This document shows, one piece after another, positions 7,782-27,666 of a stretch of 62,754 nucleotides of DNA (its first letter is position 1; each line of letters begins with the position of its first letter). A program made the position numbers and the translations under genes. The notes beneath the pieces were generated by a model. The model had not been told where the DNA came from and did not search any database. It worked only from the letters and a program-made list of their open reading frames with translations. The stretch is from Stylophora pistillata (lineage: Eukaryota). The stretch spans positions 362,417 through 425,170 of the forward strand of contig NW_019217814.1 in NCBI RefSeq assembly GCF_002571385.2. The letters are read 5' to 3'.

Positions 7782-10700
7782 ATGGAAATACTGTCAAATG
7801 GAACAATACAGTATGCTTTGAGTAAGTAACACTAAAGCGTGCTTATTTAGGAAACTTTATGGAAATTAGATATAATGATTGATACAAGCGGTGTTTGAAG
7901 GTTTAGTGCACACACAGCATGGACATTCTGCAGGTCACGAGTGCACGTTTGCAACCAATTTTTGTCTGGTAAATTTGATATTTGTTGCAAAGTAAACTTC
8001 TTTAGGTAGCAACTATAGTCCTTACTCTTTAGCTTAGAACGTCCATGCTACAAAACGGGATAACAAATGTAGCAATAGGTTTTCTACTGAGTTAGCTCAG
8101 GGCGCTGCACTTTTGTCAACAACTGGTATTAGCAGTATTTCAGTCTCACCCTTTTTTATGGCTTTCGCTTAACACTGCTGATAAACACCAACACAGGGTT
8201 TGGCGACAAACCCACCAATAACACAACCGTTCATAGATGGTTCGATAAAGTCTATTATAAACGTCAGAACTTTGAAAATTGCAATTTTTGTGTTCGCGGA
8301 GAAAGTTCTTTTAAGCTAGCTACGCCCATCTCTAAAATAGGCATTCCCAAAGGGCGTGAATACAGTTAGTTACACGGAATGACATGGATGTTTACACGAT
8401 AAACTAATAATAATTGAGCAATGTGTGACTTAAAAAGATCATTAAATCTTTTCTTTGAAATGAAGCTGCATTTCTAATCTGATAAAGAAAAAGGAATGTT
8501 ATTGGAAAAAATTTCCTTTTCTAGCTTGGCACGACGGGTGGATTGACGGGTGGCAACAATCATCATTTGTTTTAGGGGAGTGTGATCTTGAATTAAAAGC
8601 ATGTCTTTCTATGTTTCTAATTTCGATTTTGTTCCTCTCACAGAGGAACAAGGGAACGAACCATAGCAAGATATGTTGGAAATCCTGAATAAATGTACAA
8701 AAGTTATTATTATAAGTCCCGTTCCTTCCATGATCTCGACTCCAGAAAAATAGCAAATTTCCTCCAAAAGTGTTTTTTTTAACAAGTTCTACTGTTAGCT
8801 ACAAACGTGAGTTTTAAGTGATTTTGCTGAGAGCTTTAATAATTGTTACACATGTACTTTTTTCTGGAACTTTTCCAAGGAAGGAGAACCCGGTTAGGGT
8901 CATTCAGATAATTCGCGGGTGACCGATTTTCATTTTGTTGTAGAGTTTTTGTGAATAGGGAGATTAGGAATCTATGGGATACATTCTCACTGTGTTCCTA
9001 AGTGGTTTCCTTCTTCGTACTTTGGGTCTCATGAACATAGCCGAAAGAATATAGGTTCAATTATTTTTAAAAGCCTGTTTCATTCCAAGACAGAAATTAT
9101 CATTCCAATTAAAATGAACAACTTTTTCATGAGTGCGGAATTAATTTTAGCCAACCTGTCTACAAATATTGAGCTTCCAAAGAAGTTATTTTTTAGTGTA
9201 TAAATCTAAATTTTGTTCAGCGATCTATATCATTAAAAAAAATCTATCCTTTTATAATTTCAACTTACAACTTCTCTAGAGACTCTGAGTTATTTTCACG
9301 TAACCTATTTACTTTATTTCAGACCTTTCTGACCAGACCAGTGAGGAAACTTACGTCACACCACAGGATAATTCAGCTGATATCAGCGCGTTCTTTTTCC
9401 CCGCCATTGGTGCGTTTCTTATGCTCATGTTTGGCGGTTTACTTTTTTCAAGCGGAAGTGTCCTGTGCAGAAGCAAAAAAATGTCGGAGGATAAGTTCAA
9501 AAGAAAATTTGAACAGCGATATGGGCGACGGATGATTCGTTTTCATAACATACCGGAGAAAATTGCAAAAGAGCCATCTTCTGTGCTGCAGCAAGAAAAC
9601 AACGACGTCGTGGATGCTGTTAGGAAAGATTATCAAGACCTACCACAGTACCAACCAGTCACTGGATTAGTTGGCAATATCGCGGGATTACTTGGGCAGA
9701 CATGCGTCGTCAACATATCCAAGCCGGAAATCAGAGATACAGGTGTAAGTCCGATTCATTTCAACGCAAAAGATCGCGAAAATTCTTCGTATCAAGACAG
9801 AGATGACGGGGTAGAATGTTCTAGCAAAGACGATTGCGCGCGAAGAAACCCCACAGCGTCCAGTGGAATAGGTACAGATTCTCCGGAGAGTTATGAAGTT
9901 GATAGTTTAGAAGAGTATCCTATCAGTGAACATTGTTCTTTAAGTGCTCAAGAAGGAGAAATATATGAGATACCTGGCAGACATCAGACGCCTAAATTTG
10001 ACCGTGGGGTGTATAGTGGTGGACGGTCAAGTGTGCTGCAGTTAGAAAGTGCCCCAAGTACTTTATGCGTTAAAGGCTGTCGTTGTCGCATACACGGCGC
10101 AGGTGCTGACAAAAAGAGAACTAAGGAAGCGAAGCCTCGCGTGAACTAAACACGACTTACTTGGGGTGATATTGCACGAAACTCGAATGAAATTCAGAAT
10201 CATGGGAGTGAAAATGACGCACATGCAACGTTGAGTGAAATGATAAGGCCTCAAACTCCAGGTGCAAGGATATCTGGTTCTCTAACTTCAGAGAATATCA
10301 AAGGAATGAGTCAAAGTCCATTGGGACGCATGGATTTAGAAAAGTGGCTAAACGATGTGGAAGCGTCCCGCAGTGAAGGAGGAAAAGTCTGCACTTCAAC
10401 ATCTGAGTCTCCTGACGAAGAAATTGGGAGGTGTGGGAATGCAACGCATGAGAGAGATTCTTATTCGAGCCGAAGACGAATGCGTGCACCTCTTCAGGAA
10501 AGTTTACAGTTGTTGGAAAAACTGCAGTTAGTTTCAGAAGATGATTTGCCCTTGGCTCAGAACTCAGTCCATCGTGGAGGTCGCACAAGCTGCTTGCAAA
10601 CGGTAAAGGCACCAGGCTCACTGTGTTTGGGTCCAGGTAGTTGCAAAGGACATGGTGAGTTTCAGATGATGTCTAGGCAGTCAAATTTGCCAACTAAGAT

Positions 10701-12033: not shown

Positions 12034-13585
12034 AATGGATAAAAATTGATTGAGAAACTACTCTGTATATGACTGAAGGAAGCGGAAACCCACAATAACT
12101 ATCACTTTTAATGGAAAAGTGTTATATATATTTTGTACCGAATAAAGATATTATTGTGACTTTTGTAATATCGGAGAGATTATCAAGAAAACAGGTTTTG
12201 GCTTGCTTGAACATCGTAAAAGATTCAACTCCATTTTTCATGATTAAAAAAAAACCGCCAAACTTCCTCAATTCTAATTATTCTTGAGACTTTTCAAGCA
12301 AAGATTTTGTCTCTTTTAGAGTTTATCTTTTCTGGGAGCTATTATTTTGAGATTTCCTGCCAATTTACGTCTTACTATATTTAACGACCTAAAACAATTC
12401 AATATATCTCGACTGACGTACTCTTTAAGGGTCTACTCATCATGAAACCAAAAACAGATGCTATTTTAGTTTTACTTACATGCACAACAAGAGGATGTTT
12501 ACGCAAGACGAAATGCTTCACTTTCGAGAAACTTGAAATTAGGAATCTTTCAAACTGTTCATAATAGATGGTTAATTAGCTTTCAAAATTTAAATGCATG
12601 GGGTTCATTCGAAAAGGGTTTGATTAATTAACCCTCTAATACCACCTAAATAAATTTATTTCACTTTACACCGAAACGAAACCGAGATTGAAGAAAAAAA
12701 ATCTCTTAAGGCTTTCCTGTTTGTAGCCTCTGGACAAGCAGGCAGTTTAAGCCCAGTGTAACTCAAATATTTTCCTTTTTTTAACCATATTTTCTTTGTT
12801 GCCGAGAAGAATGTACCATTCATTCGAGTCTGTGAAGTGACATAACCTTTATTATGTATTTCTCGCCTTAAAGAGAAAGCTTTAAAAAATCATAGTTAAT
12901 TATGAAAAATCTTATAGCGGCAGGTGCTTTAGAATGGTAATTGCCATTTTGCATGGAATGTTGTTTTCAAAGGTTGAAAATAAAACCAATCAAGGAATTC
13001 ACTGCAAGACGTCAAAAATCGATGAAAATCAAACGGAAAGATAATAAACCAACAAAAAGTAAGCGATAATCGAGAGGTGTTTACATGACATCGACCTTGA
13101 GAGCTTTACATTAATGTATTGTGGTTGAATATGGAACGCGAGAAGGGGGTGAAAAACAGATTGGCGGTCCAAAAACCATCATTTGACATTGATCGAACAG
13201 TAGTTCATTTATTCCAAGAGTAATCTAATTTATTTCAGAGTAAATACTGTTTCTGGAGCATGTATGACGCAAAGAGAACTGAGTGGGTAAGCAGTGTTTT
13301 GCATAACAACAAACCCACGGCCGAATCCATCAACATGTTACGCACGAATGAATACGGAACTTTGAAGGTCTTTATGATGGACAGATACAAAAGGCTCTTT
13401 AATAAGCCTTATTTATATTCACAACTCATTTGTATCAGTAAATGACCTACTCGACCCCGCGAAAAGTCCAGGTAAGCAGAGCCTTCGACACGTTCACGCA
13501 TTAAGAAGTTCCCGTTTGGTTGTGACACGAGAAGGCAAGGTTTTTTTACAGCCGAAAAAGGAGACATGACTTCAGAAACGTTCAA

Positions 13586-24369: not shown

Positions 24370-27300
24370 CTAGTGATAAACTGATGTCATGACAGCCTCT
24401 TTCCCGCCAGACTCTTCGCCTTCTGGTCCTTGATAGAACTTCTCTTTTCCAAGGAGTCGCAAGCCTATGGGACGCAAGACTTGTTTAAGGTACCCGTGCA
24501 CGAACGTGCCTCTTGCTCCTAGCATTTGTGGGGCCATATTGTATAAGCTCTTCAGTGGGGACATAAAGGAATCAACCAAATCATGATCCACAATGTCAGC
24601 GTAACACGACACCCAAACACCGTCCACAATCATGGTCCCTTCCCGGGTAACTGGTGCAAAGGCTCCTAATCTTTCAGCTGTCGTAACTGACATAACCCCC
24701 TTTGCAATAGGAGCACGGTACGTTGAAACATGAACGAGGATATAGTCACCTGGTTTGATTTGGGACGCATGCACAGAGCGGAAGGTATTTCCTCCCAACT
24801 TAAGTTGGAACTCGAACACAAGATGAGCCTCACTAAGTGTGAGCTTAATGTTGTCTTCAGTGGTGATGGTGTAATAATGACCTGCACAGGAAGAAAATTT
24901 GCGCTGCATTTATGATTCTTTTTCATAACACCTTTTAATTTCTCTTAAGAGTCTTTTCAAACACAAGTCTCTCAGGACTAAAGTCAGCACCAGAATAGTA
25001 TTGGTTCCTTAGCAAAAGAAAAAAAAAAGCGTAGTCGGTGTTTAAATCGTATCGGTGGAATCAGAAATATTAGTGTTTGGGAGCCAATCAGATACTAAGG
25101 ATAGCCAGTAATTTCCAAACAAATGTAATTACAGCAAACACCTTTTCAAGGAAAACTTAAAAAATGAGGATAAGTTTTAGGACCAAAATTGGAACATGAG
25201 GGGATAAAATGATTCACGGGCACCACCTACCCTTGTAATCAGGCGCTTGATCCAAGAAGGTGACAACAGGACTAAAGATAATCTCGCCACCCTTAGAAAA
25301 GGTCTTGACTGTCTCTCCAATGGCAAGCTCACTGATGGGAATCTTCTTCCCAGATCTGAGCTCTACTTTAGCTTTCGAAGGGAAGCATGATTGCTGAACA
25401 TTGACGTTGATCCCGCAGCCGTCTAAAACAAAAGGGGGAAAAGAGTCATCGAGCTAATTAACTCAGGTGATTGATAAGCTACAAGTCTTCAACCGTGTCA
25501 TGCTCAATGACTGAAAATTTCAAAAGACGCATCTCAGATAGACGGGCTACAATTTTCCTTCAGATTTGTTCACTAGTATGCGTAGTTAGTGAAATGAATG
25601 GAAGTCGTAGCGAAGATGCTTTCGGTAGCAGGGTTCGAAACTGCCAATACTTAAAGGAAATTTCTGTAGCAGATTTGCTCCTGTTATTCCTTTCTCGTAC
25701 TCAAACCACTTACAGCCAACCGAGGTAAGCTTTCAAAGGGAAAGGCTCCTTTGACCAGGTTAGCAAGTATAATCTACATCATAAAATCATTCGGCCCAGG
25801 CGCTCAAATTGGCTAAATTTCCTCCACCCAAAATTTACTCCAATGTGTTTCTTCCACTTACCTGGTCGAGTAGGCCACAACTGAGCAGATAAGAAATTTT
25901 TGTGTTTAAGGACACCTTTAGCTTGATGAAATCCATATCCGTCCCACAGCAGAACGCTACAATCGTTGCTGTCATCTCCATCTTTAATGTCAACGAACAT
26001 TATCCCCTTTTGTCCACGAAAAACCGCTGTCTTGTTAGATACAACGGGCGCCCCATATTCTTCCTTGAGGTACTCTAACAGAGGAGCTCGTTCATAGAAG
26101 TAATGGTAGCCTTTCCGACCCTTCTTGCTTCCACTCCTTTCCGTTGTCACATTTAACACGGCGCTCATTCGCAGTATGCATGTGGCGTTCAATGGGAATT
26201 TAAGAACGCTTCTTTTACCCGGGAAAAGGTACTCTTTAACGTCCGAACCGTTGTAAAGCCCACCATTACGTTGATTGCCAAGATACATTTTTTGAAGGAT
26301 GGAGAAACGTGGCAGCATTTCTGTACACGCAATGAAAGTGCAAATGTTTTGAATCATGAAAGAGGTAAGTGGCAGCCATTACATTAACCTCGGTACGAAA
26401 AGGAAAAAGATCACAGCGAGGCTCCCACTCAAAGTCAAAGCCTTCAAAGAATAATCATGAATGCACGTTACAGCTTTCGCGCGCGGATCTCCTCATCGCA
26501 AAGGGATGCGGGATTCGATTAGCGTTCGTTGGAAGAGTAAAAAGTAAACAGGCACCTTTTCGAAAAAGACCTTGGAGATATTTTAGAAAACTCAGGAGCA
26601 TATCGAAGATTTCTTAAGTTCCTTTAAACAGACTTTTCGATCAAGTTTCCATCGGCCGGCTGCTTTTGTCGCATTTGATACGTCTCACTGGTTTAACTAA
26701 AAGGCGGTAGATTGGTATAAGGAACCAGACACATAATATTTTAAAGGCTGATAGTTTCGAAAGAAACTGTTTGGGGCTGCGTCGGTGGGAGTAACGAAAT
26801 AATTTGGATATATCAACAAAGTTGAAATGGTAAATTAGCCACCGTAATGATTACAAAAGCTGACGTTTCGAGCGTTAGCCCTTCGTCGGAGCGAATAGAG
26901 GAATTGTGGGTTGTGTGTGCTTTTCTGCCTTTAAAAGCACACACAACCCACAATTCCTCTATTCGCTCCAACGAAGGGCTAACGCTTGAAACGTCAGTTT
27001 TTGTAATCATTACGGTGGCTAATTTACCATTTCAACTTTGTTGATATATCCACATAATATTTTAGCTTTAAGTTTTAGTATCATGAGACAATAGACATAA
27101 AAATTTGTTGTTACATCATGGTGGGGATACCAAATTCGGTCTCCTCGCACCGTAAGCACTCAATGAAATTAAAACCATCACGAAAGTAAACAAACTGCGC
27201 ATTTGCAAAAATGAATAGAGCAATGCAGTATGGCACGGTTAAATGCATGTTAAAATGTTTCTCGAGCGCGGAAAGAATGTAGAAACGTTATTGCGATATC

Positions 27301-27666
27301 TATAGATGCGGCGCGGAAGAGCAAAAGTTCTAATTTGTTACCAAATTTAATTTGGTACGTGGTATAAGGTTTCCCGGGCCTAGCTTGAAACGCATGGAAT
27401 AGCAGCTGGCGTCATTATTTTACCAACCAAAACCCTGCGATCACAGTGGTGAATAGCGGGATTACAAGACCTCACGAAAGGCTAAGTCGGACTCAGGAGA
27501 TGTTTACATAAACACCGCTGCGCATAACCAACTTTGCGGCTGCCAACACCCACACTTACGGAGCTGATCGAACCGCCACAAATGGAGCATAAGAACATTT
27601 TAAATACTCACTGGTGAAGGTCACCGGTAGAGTAAACGCAAGGAGTATCGTCACCAACACCTTCAT
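24370..27666 (-). CDS. Secreted Tae4/Dae4-like amidase domain fused to a Hedgehog-type Hog (Hint + SRR) domain; exons 27666-27612, 26320-25862, 25422-25231, 24881-24370; 405 aa
   Basis: All introns are GT/AG phase 1 and the exons sum to 1218 nt. Signal peptide MKVLVTILLAFTLPVTFT. Tae4-like motifs LPRF, CILRMSAVLN, YLKEEYGAP, FRGQKGIMFV, VLLWDG, QLW. Hint motifs QS/CFP, ISELAIGETV, VVTFLD, LTLSEAHL, ASQIKPGD, FAPVTREGTMIVDGVWVSCYA, followed by an SRR-like tail. Confidence 0.9.
26744..27050. mobile_element. Penelope-like inverted insertion forming a 120-bp-arm hairpin in intron 1 of the Dae4-Hint gene, with 14-bp TSD
   Basis: Arms 26805-26924 and 26933-27052 (3 mismatches counted, 8-nt loop). 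CACATAATATTTTA at 26730-26743 and 27051-27064. Each arm carries a hammerhead-like motif. Confidence 0.8.

Follow-up and report, generated by a model that had tools for sequence, protein, structure and literature searches.

The window analyzed here, a stretch of 62,754 nucleotides from the coral Stylophora pistillata (contig NW_019217814.1, positions 362,417 to 425,170), carries a four-exon gene on its minus strand (window positions 24370-27666). The predicted product combines a signal peptide, a domain with the fold of Tae4 (a bacterial amidase effector of type VI secretion systems, T6SS) and a Hog domain, the autoprocessing part of Hedgehog proteins. A preliminary description, made from the letters of the window alone, had proposed an intact open reading frame (ORF) of 405 aa, and the four coding segments indeed join in frame to a total of 405 codons. 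All three introns are of the GT..AG type and the split codons read K (Lys), D (Asp), and G (Gly), respectively. The cleavage position proposed for the Hog domain, S183/C184, also reads exactly as described. The features are listed below in the direction of transcription.

27612..27666 (-): coding portion of exon 1 (the start codon, then 18 codons for a hydrophobic signal peptide; phase 1 at its end)
26321..27611 (-): intron 1, GT..AG, with a palindromic high-copy repeat inside at 26799-27058
25862..26320 (-): exon 2, 459 bases, symmetrical phase 1-1; the whole Tae4-fold domain, residues ~20-172
26178..26180 (-): Cys66 codon (residue 47 when counted in the exon-2 reference); aligns with the catalytic Cys44 of Salmonella Tae4
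25956..25958 (-): codon of Ser140, exon-2 residue 121, which sits at the position of the catalytic His126 of Tae4
25423..25861 (-): intron 2, GT..AG; spliced in most runs, retained in some poly(A) RNA contigs
25231..25422 (-): exon 3; linker with the conserved Cys174, the Ser183/Cys184 site and the initial 52 residues of Hog, among them Asp229
25387-25385 (-): codon of Cys184, directly after Ser183
24882..25230 (-): intron 3, GT..AG
24370..24881 (-): exon 4, coding part and stop; the remaining Hint module with Ser252..His255, SCYA at 327-330 and a tail of ~75 residues resembling the sterol recognition region (SRR)

The 5' untranslated region extends to at least 27735 (RNA contig covering 27612-27735), and the 3' untranslated region runs past 24300. 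RNA runs matching the locus are labelled coral or coral metagenome and stem from eleven studies; three sets of poly(A) contigs (X1, X3, and X4) and one raw-read run (X24), from four studies, were mapped in detail. X1, X3, and X24 all contain the joint of exon 2 to exon 3 (25422|25862; its plus-strand borders CT..AC correspond to GT..AG on the minus strand), the junction of 26320-25862 to 25422-25231 on which the preliminary description had made its two-domain model depend. Exon 3 is joined to exon 4 (24881|25231) in all four runs, as contigs in X1, X3, and X4 and as raw reads in X24. This second joint was mapped as 24879|25230 plus one letter, which equals the predicted joint with a synonymous variant at 24880. 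The raw reads are strongly skewed to ‘first mate on +’, as expected of minus-strand RNA in a standard stranded library. Of the three predicted junctions, those of introns 2 and 3 were thus seen directly, but the exon 1-exon 2 joint is not among the RNA joints listed for the four runs. Indirect support for the latter comes from the exon 1 boundary, with an RNA contig that begins exactly at the donor 27612, and from the full-length orthologs P0069, P0074, and P0075, which share the layout ‘MK..hydrophobic..|MLPxF’.

Contigs over intron 2 also occur in X3 and X4 and, at low depth, in X1. One X3 contig passes from exon 3 into exon 2 without splicing, indicating that retention is not negligible in some libraries. 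In the retained form, translation would reach a stop 31 codons past exon 2 (read-through ORF 25779-26357), and a soluble Tae4-like protein lacking the Hog domain would result; the tails added by read-through show no conservation from species to species. The RNA differs from the assembly at 24880, 25313, 25920, and other positions, which are probably population polymorphisms. At 24880, three runs carry a synonymous variant, A>G when read on the plus strand, that falls in the Gly codon split between exons 3 and 4.

Exons were searched and folded singly (window:25863-26318:-, 25232-25420:-, and 24373-24879:-), and statements about the whole protein are drawn from natural full-length orthologs, not from the joined 405-residue protein. 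None of the exons has a match in NCBIfam. When exon 2 alone was compared to the PDB, the only matches were three Salmonella Tae4 chains (E = 0.03). A word-index search with exon 2 yielded 13 orthologous exon-sized ORFs with 51-81% identity. The profile of the resulting 14 orthologous exons matched the Tae4 structures 4J30, 4HFF, and 4JUR (Salmonella, E = 4.4e-9; Enterobacter, E = 5.7e-4) and nothing else of note in the PDB. The Pfam family Tae4 (PF14113) is matched by 13 of the 14 orthologous exons with a best E-value of 7.9e-7, and P0016, P0014, and others score above its cut-off. An AlphaFold2 model of the exon-2 domain, built on the ortholog alignment, has a predicted local distance difference test score (pLDDT) of 66 and a predicted template modeling score of 0.66. 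In a Foldseek search with this model, ranks 1 to 11 are all Tae4/Ssp structures (probability 1.00; template modeling score, TM, 0.60-0.68), followed by a gap to E > 0.8, and Tae4 clusters make up 22 of the 30 matches of an ESM Atlas feature search. The homology of the exon-2 domain to Tae4 is established by these four lines (ortholog profile, Foldseek, Pfam on the orthologs, ESM Atlas), which bear out the Tae4 pattern that had been proposed for the N-domain. The motifs given for it (CxxRMSxxLN, YL..GxP, FxGxKGI, VxLWxG, and the terminal LW) coincide with the blocks aligned to Tae4, and the proposed lack of a Hedge signaling domain is supported as well, the cargo being a Tae4-family fold. Compared to the bacterial Tae4 proteins of Salmonella Typhimurium (STM0277) and Enterobacter cloacae (4HFF, 4J30, 4JUR, 4HFK), the coral domain has a TM of 0.65-0.68 and 22-26% identity, and the blocks shared by both comprise the surroundings of the nucleophile Cys, the helix with YL..GxP, GxKGI, the strand with LWxG, and LW at the terminus.

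The second half of the protein is a Hog domain. Exons 3 and 4 match the Pfam family Hint (PF01079) with E-values of 2.5e-12 and 8.6e-25, respectively, covering profile positions 10-187 of 213, and only Drosophila Hedgehog and human SHH were matched by the two exons in the PDB. The alignment to Drosophila Hh-C17 (1AT0) opens at its Cys1 and is collinear throughout: Cys184 corresponds to Hog position 1, Asp229 to 46, Ser252 to 69 (Thr in Hh, a conservative change of Thr to Ser), and His255 to 72, followed by SCYA at 327-330. The residues listed in the preliminary description (SxxH, the aspartate of FLD, and SCYA) are all present and, as judged from this alignment, none of the residues that are known to power N-to-S shift and cholesterol transfer is missing from the coral Hog domain. 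Its SRR-like tail can be followed in part: ~75 residues come after SCYA, of which the first ~25 can be aligned with residues 400-423 of Drosophila Hh, at the beginning of the SRR, but the remainder is without a scored match. The Hint module thus has Cys1, Asp46, His72, and SCYA collinear with both Hh-C17 and SHH-C. In other Hog proteins (nematode Warthog, Groundhog, and Quahog, choanoflagellate Hoglet, and Lophohog) the secreted N-terminal cargo differs by family, as it does here. Unlike in Hedgehog, the cargo would be an enzyme fold that came from bacteria by horizontal transfer, Ser and not Gly stands at -1, position 69 is Ser and not Thr, and there is no N-terminal Cys for palmitoylation.

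This type of Hog protein has been described before. Burglin (2008; PMC2362128) listed Nv 120428 of Nematostella and the expressed sequence tag (EST) DY579185 of Acropora millepora as Hog proteins (‘Y-hog’) that have in common a ‘new upstream motif’ in which three cysteines are conserved. No similarity of the N-terminus was found outside Cnidaria, and divergence was favored over domain acquisition for the N-termini of cnidarian Hog proteins; contemporary gene predictions covered the Hog part only and the adduct, ‘a sterol or similar moiety’, was merely postulated (PMC2362128). JGI 120428 has been equated by Rottinger et al. (2012; PMC3531958) with the NvHint3 gene of Matus et al. 2008. The sequences in Burglin's Additional file match the window protein block by block in both halves, including Cys66, Cys139, and Cys174 with their flanking blocks. 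NvHint3 (ABX89901.1) and DY579185 share the architecture of the coral protein as well as xTCxLRxS, GIM, CxxLLWDG, the linker Cys, CFPS, SCYAD, and the KFY tail. By these matches, the window gene is the scleractinian ortholog of the Nv 120428/NvHint3 ‘Y-hog’ family. The preliminary description knew of no account of this N-domain in cnidarian Hog proteins; the family itself was already known as ‘Y-hog’/NvHint3, but the Tae4 identity of its N-terminus appears to be new. Where the 2008 description had a motif, we identify an apparently acquired Tae4-family fold. A literature search for links between Tae4 or Dae4 and Hog, Hint, or hedgehog found no relevant paper (Chou et al. 2015 lying outside this search), and the identity of the cargo domain seems unrecognized in print.

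The fusion of both domains is conserved across Hexacorallia, in other corals as well as anemones. The exon order is the same on contigs of two other species (L002 and L012), and full-length ORFs with both domains, 407-474 residues long, were found as P0016/P0069, P0074, P0075, and P0076, the last being an ‘uncharacterized protein’ of Montipora capricornis at NCBI. In the partial protein P0019 of Actinostola the Tae4 domain continues into CFPS (a word-index protein search with P0019 matched only P0019 itself), and the fusion is also carried by the Acropora EST DY579185 and Nematostella Nv 120428. All three coding parts encoded by exons 2 to 4 are under purifying selection, with a ratio of nonsynonymous to synonymous rates (dN/dS) of ~0.25: compared to the closest species (L012), the values are 0.25, 0.29, and 0.26 for exons 2, 3, and 4, respectively.

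In Salmonella Tae4, Cys44, His126, and Asp137 are each needed for toxicity, Asp137 being flanked by Cys135 and Cys139 (Benz et al.; PMC3695027), and the substitutions H126A and D137A abolish toxicity (PMC3695027). A profile scan of 1.8 billion representatives returned 57 proteins, and a quick maximum-likelihood tree of 50 domain sequences was constructed (midpoint-rooted, with support from the SH-like approximate likelihood ratio test, SH-aLRT). This tree splits a bacterial-type group with both Cys and His, including toxins associated with Rhs, from a eukaryote-type group with 99% SH-aLRT support. The eukaryote-type group contains three clades. The first, a sister clade, consists of secreted molluscan Tae4-like proteins (P0023, Dreissena polymorpha XP_052269735.1; P0079, Sepia pharaonis; P0031; P0059), in which the His is kept and Ser, Thr, or Ala occupies the Cys position. 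The second clade (P0021, P0022, P0024, P0028, and P0036) has lost both Cys and His, and the third, supported at 99%, comprises the cnidarian Hog-type sequences, in which the Cys is kept and the His lost. Among the 50 sequences of the tree, no eukaryote-type clade has retained the full Cys-His dyad, and in the scan of 1.8 billion representatives the only Cys-bearing relatives of the eukaryote type belong to the Hog-type clade. One ancient transfer would fit this tree, from which neither the direction nor the number of transfers can be read.

The nearest characterized relative of the N-domain comes from Nematostella. Margolis et al. (2021; PMC8713801) describe two tae4 homologs of this anemone, first found by Chou et al. 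2015, of which only nvDae4 has the catalytic Cys. The protein bears a signal peptide, and its cleavage of peptidoglycan and killing of Bacillus depend on the Cys, with C63A as an inactivating substitution; it is induced by cyclic GMP-AMP (cGAMP), NF-kB, and Pseudomonas infection; a Hint domain is not mentioned (PMC8713801). Both nvDae4 and the coral protein are thus eukaryotic Tae4 homologs with a signal peptide and with the Cys at nearly the same residue number (63 in nvDae4, 66 in the coral, and 64 in Burglin's model of Nv 120428). The chances that nvDae4 and the N-domain of NvHint3 are the same are about even, given the numbers 63 and 64, the older predictions restricted to the Hog part, and the presence of the Cys in Hog-type relatives only. 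In contrast, no Hog fusion is mentioned for nvDae4, and neither the canonical His nor the Asp is present in the coral domain.

Taken together, we favor, with a probability of roughly 0.55, a secreted precursor that undergoes Hog autoprocessing to give a lipid-tethered Tae4-fold fragment engaging peptidoglycan. The signal peptide would bring the precursor into the endoplasmic reticulum (ER), where the Hog domain (Cys184 to the end) would catalyze an N-to-S acyl shift at Ser183-Cys184, aided by His255 and Ser252, to form a thioester. The latter would be resolved by a nucleophile, most likely the 3-beta-OH of a sterol activated by Asp229, releasing an N-fragment of ~165 residues with a C-terminal lipid ester. 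This fragment would be tethered at the surface of the secreting epithelium and engage bacterial peptidoglycan there. The cargo would belong to the Dae4 lineage, acquired from bacterial type VI amidase effectors and carried on a single phase 1-1 exon between the signal-peptide and Hog exons. The steps differ in how firmly they can be put forward: autocleavage at Ser183|Cys184 via a thioester is very probable from established Hedgehog chemistry, peptidoglycan as the target is somewhat favored by family membership and the Nematostella data, and for a sterol adduct activated by Asp229 the chances are evenly divided.

Several observations weigh against this reading, starting with the assignment of the domain. 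For exon 2 of this coral alone, PF14113 is the top match in Pfam, but with E = 0.0044 and 17.5 bits it stays under the curated cut-off of 27 bits. The structure model is of moderate quality (pLDDT 66), with low confidence in the loop of the third triad residue. The catalytic residues are a second point. The preliminary description had called the domain a domesticated T6SS amidase, and to the extent that it has a Tae4-family fold and Cys66, which pairs with Tae4 Cys44 in both HMMER and MAFFT alignments and is invariant in all Hog-type sequences, this holds. The Cys-His dyad is broken, however. The column of Tae4 His126 contains Ser140 in the coral protein in both types of alignment, which leaves the domain without the canonical general base. 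S, G, D, or N fills this column in all 20 Hog-type sequences of the tree, and in partial matches outside the tree it contains R (P0018 and P0047) or His (P0027); it looks unconstrained in the Hog-type relatives. The Asp137 column contains Gln151, which is invariant in Hog-type sequences and common to most of the eukaryote-type group, and the Cys135/Cys139 pair has no counterpart in the coral domain. Because the His126 position is Ser, the Asp137 position is Gln, and the Cys pair is missing, amidase activity of the coral domain is doubtful, and on its sequence we regard it as uncertain. Bacterial Tae4 is cytoplasmic, delivered by the T6SS, paired with the immunity protein Tai4, and equipped with the Cys-His-Asp triad and the Cys135/Cys139 pair. 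Unlike bacterial Tae4, the coral domain is predicted to be secreted through the ER, is fused to a Hog domain, has Ser for His and Gln for Asp without the Cys pair, and falls in a separate eukaryote-type clade.

A third set of observations concerns the Hog half and the biological role. The Ser that replaces the Gly of Hedgehog at -1 of the cleavage Cys is Thr or Leu in relatives, and the Hog Asp46 position is His in P0016/P0069 (residue ~227) and Gln in Nematostella Nv 120428. This Asp is kept in Stylophora, Acropora, P0074, and P0075. Since Asp46 varies in relatives, sterol transfer may not be a property of the whole family, and the adduct chemistry may differ within it. In Nematostella embryos, NvHint3 is among the genes up-regulated by ectopic activation of canonical Wnt signaling (PMC3531958), and this Wnt/beta-catenin responsiveness hints at development over immunity; according to the same paper, its embryonic expression pattern was reported by Matus et al. 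2008.

With regard to the N-fragment itself, the broken dyad argues for a pseudo-enzyme, and the invariant Cys together with the nvDae4 result argue for activity, so that an atypical hydrolase and a non-catalytic peptidoglycan binder have about even odds. The first possibility can be taken further. The N-fragment might be a competent bactericidal amidase, a true Dae4 working with Cys66 and a non-canonical base, to which the Hog domain adds a membrane or lipid anchor, and nvDae4 would then be the N-domain of NvHint3. We put this forward only tentatively. Cys66 and its flanking motif are invariant and the exon has a dN/dS of 0.25; the retention of the Cys by the Hog-type clade alone, the loss of activity of the one Cys-bearing Nematostella homolog upon C63A next to a Cys at residue 64 in Nv 120428, and a possible separate gene identifier for the N-domain (old predictions being Hog-only) point in the same direction. 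Yet there is no His at or near the dyad position, and His is required in all characterized NlpC/P60 enzymes. His150 was considered as a substitute base and rejected: this otherwise invariant residue lies beside the third-residue column (one column before it), away from the dyad position, and is replaced by Phe in Nematostella, whose NvHint3 also carries Gly in the His column and Gln in that of Hog Asp46. The identity of nvDae4 and NvHint3 is further weakened by numbering that is off by one and by the unmentioned Hint domain.

Conversely, the N-fragment might be a dead pseudo-amidase that only binds peptidoglycan or muropeptides and acts as a lipid-tethered sensor or opsonin, comparable to the non-catalytic as opposed to the amidase members of the peptidoglycan recognition proteins. 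Besides the disrupted dyad and the variability of the His column, it is the pattern of losses over the tree that speaks for such a role, with every eukaryote-type clade lacking Cys, His, or both (the Cys in molluscs, both in the second clade, and the His in the Hog clade), and purifying selection would mean that the fold is still in use. A pure binder has no obvious need of an invariant nucleophile Cys, though, and we put this possibility, too, forward only tentatively.

A different alternative leaves the cargo aside and concerns the fate of the thioester. If this is resolved by water or a small nucleophile, the Hog domain would be a self-removing pro-domain and the N-fragment would be soluble and sterol-free. 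The Asp46 position that is not conserved over the family (His in P0016, Gln in Nematostella), the partial match of the tail to Hedgehog (Hint profile up to 187 of 213), and the fact that Burglin's sterol is a postulate leave room for this course. We nevertheless consider it doubtful for Stylophora, whose Hog domain retains Asp46, Ser69, His72, and the tail of ~75 residues aligning to the start of the Drosophila SRR.

Improbable, in our opinion, is a ligand for developmental or cell-cell signaling related to Hedgehog, with the Tae4 fold reused as a receptor-binding module and no bacterial role. The Wnt response and embryonic expression of NvHint3 (PMC3531958) would fit, and other Hog proteins (Hh, nematode Warthog, and Groundhog) are signaling or cuticle-related. 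A mere scaffold, however, does not need a conserved active-site Cys and motif, the nearest characterized relative of the N-domain is an immune effector, and no receptor is known. Finally, that a stand-alone dae4 and a Hint-only gene were read as one can be dismissed: some poly(A) contigs retain intron 2, with a read-through that ends a Hog-less ORF, and prokaryote-style gene callers give the Tae4 exon as its own ORF, but the spliced joints in four RNA data sets speak against two genes, DY579185 and P0019 run from the Tae4 domain into Hog, full-length ORFs of 407-474 residues exist elsewhere, and the read-through tails are not conserved.

Returning to the lipid-tethered, peptidoglycan-engaging fragment that we favor, a more specific and speculative version would be that a bacterial T6SS amidase gene was captured through horizontal transfer as a single phase 1-1 exon and inserted between signal peptide and Hog domain in an early anthozoan. 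Hedgehog-type cholesterolysis would then serve to anchor an immune effector and not a morphogen; the product would be a sterol-tethered, Cys-dependent peptidoglycan hydrolase at the surface of the coral, and nvDae4 would be the N-fragment of NvHint3 and independent of the His. We consider this full version rather unlikely.

For one of Burglin's three cnidarian Hog families, the N-terminus now appears to be explained by the acquisition of a domain, a Tae4 fold of bacterial origin. This joins two literatures that do not cite each other, that of the Hedgehog-related ‘Hint-only’ genes and that of domesticated T6SS amidases, and provides a testable case of a Hog domain processing a non-signaling, possibly antibacterial cargo. 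It also bears on how Hog proteins gain cargo via a single symmetrical exon, on the control of surface bacteria by corals, and on whether an NlpC/P60 fold works, or is repurposed, without its histidine. A mis-annotation is possible in that nvDae4 may have been investigated on its own although it could belong to a Hog precursor; if it is the N-fragment of NvHint3, the N-domain of this family would work without the canonical His.

The Stylophora assembly of 398 Mb (G000) contains one Tae4-like locus and about ten Hog-domain loci, and no Tae4-like exon was detected at the approximately nine other Hog loci with the queries used. These include C322:211241-211579, C225:66678-66992, and C67:300464-300850, as well as clusters on C326 (four places, 272773-350237) and C267 (10627-17141); one Hog locus has an in-frame TAG. 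A scan of the assembly for PF14113 as a Pfam family gave no match, but neither did the control genomes, which makes it uninformative. A further copy of the Tae4-like exon, P0017 (92 aa), was rejected as a real paralog: many of its Ala, Thr, and Arg codons read Val, Ile, and Cys, i.e., C-to-T changes throughout, and it probably derives from a bisulfite-converted or otherwise deaminated library. On contig L002 of another species, ORFs with a C2 domain (9079-9507 and 12301-12507) follow downstream of the orthologous gene and are encoded on the strand opposite to it.

The matches to miRNA and snoRNA families of Rfam within intron 1 were discarded, all of them being under the gathering score and located on the palindromic high-copy repeat. 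At 26799-27058 (wider repeat ~26742-27083), this repeat forms a near-perfect palindrome with arms of 126 nt that are 96% complementary and 8 nt apart. It has 1815 first-look candidates in the genome, many of them half-copies with 99-100% identity, and an RNA-seq depth of 10^5, and looks like a miniature inverted-repeat transposable element (MITE).

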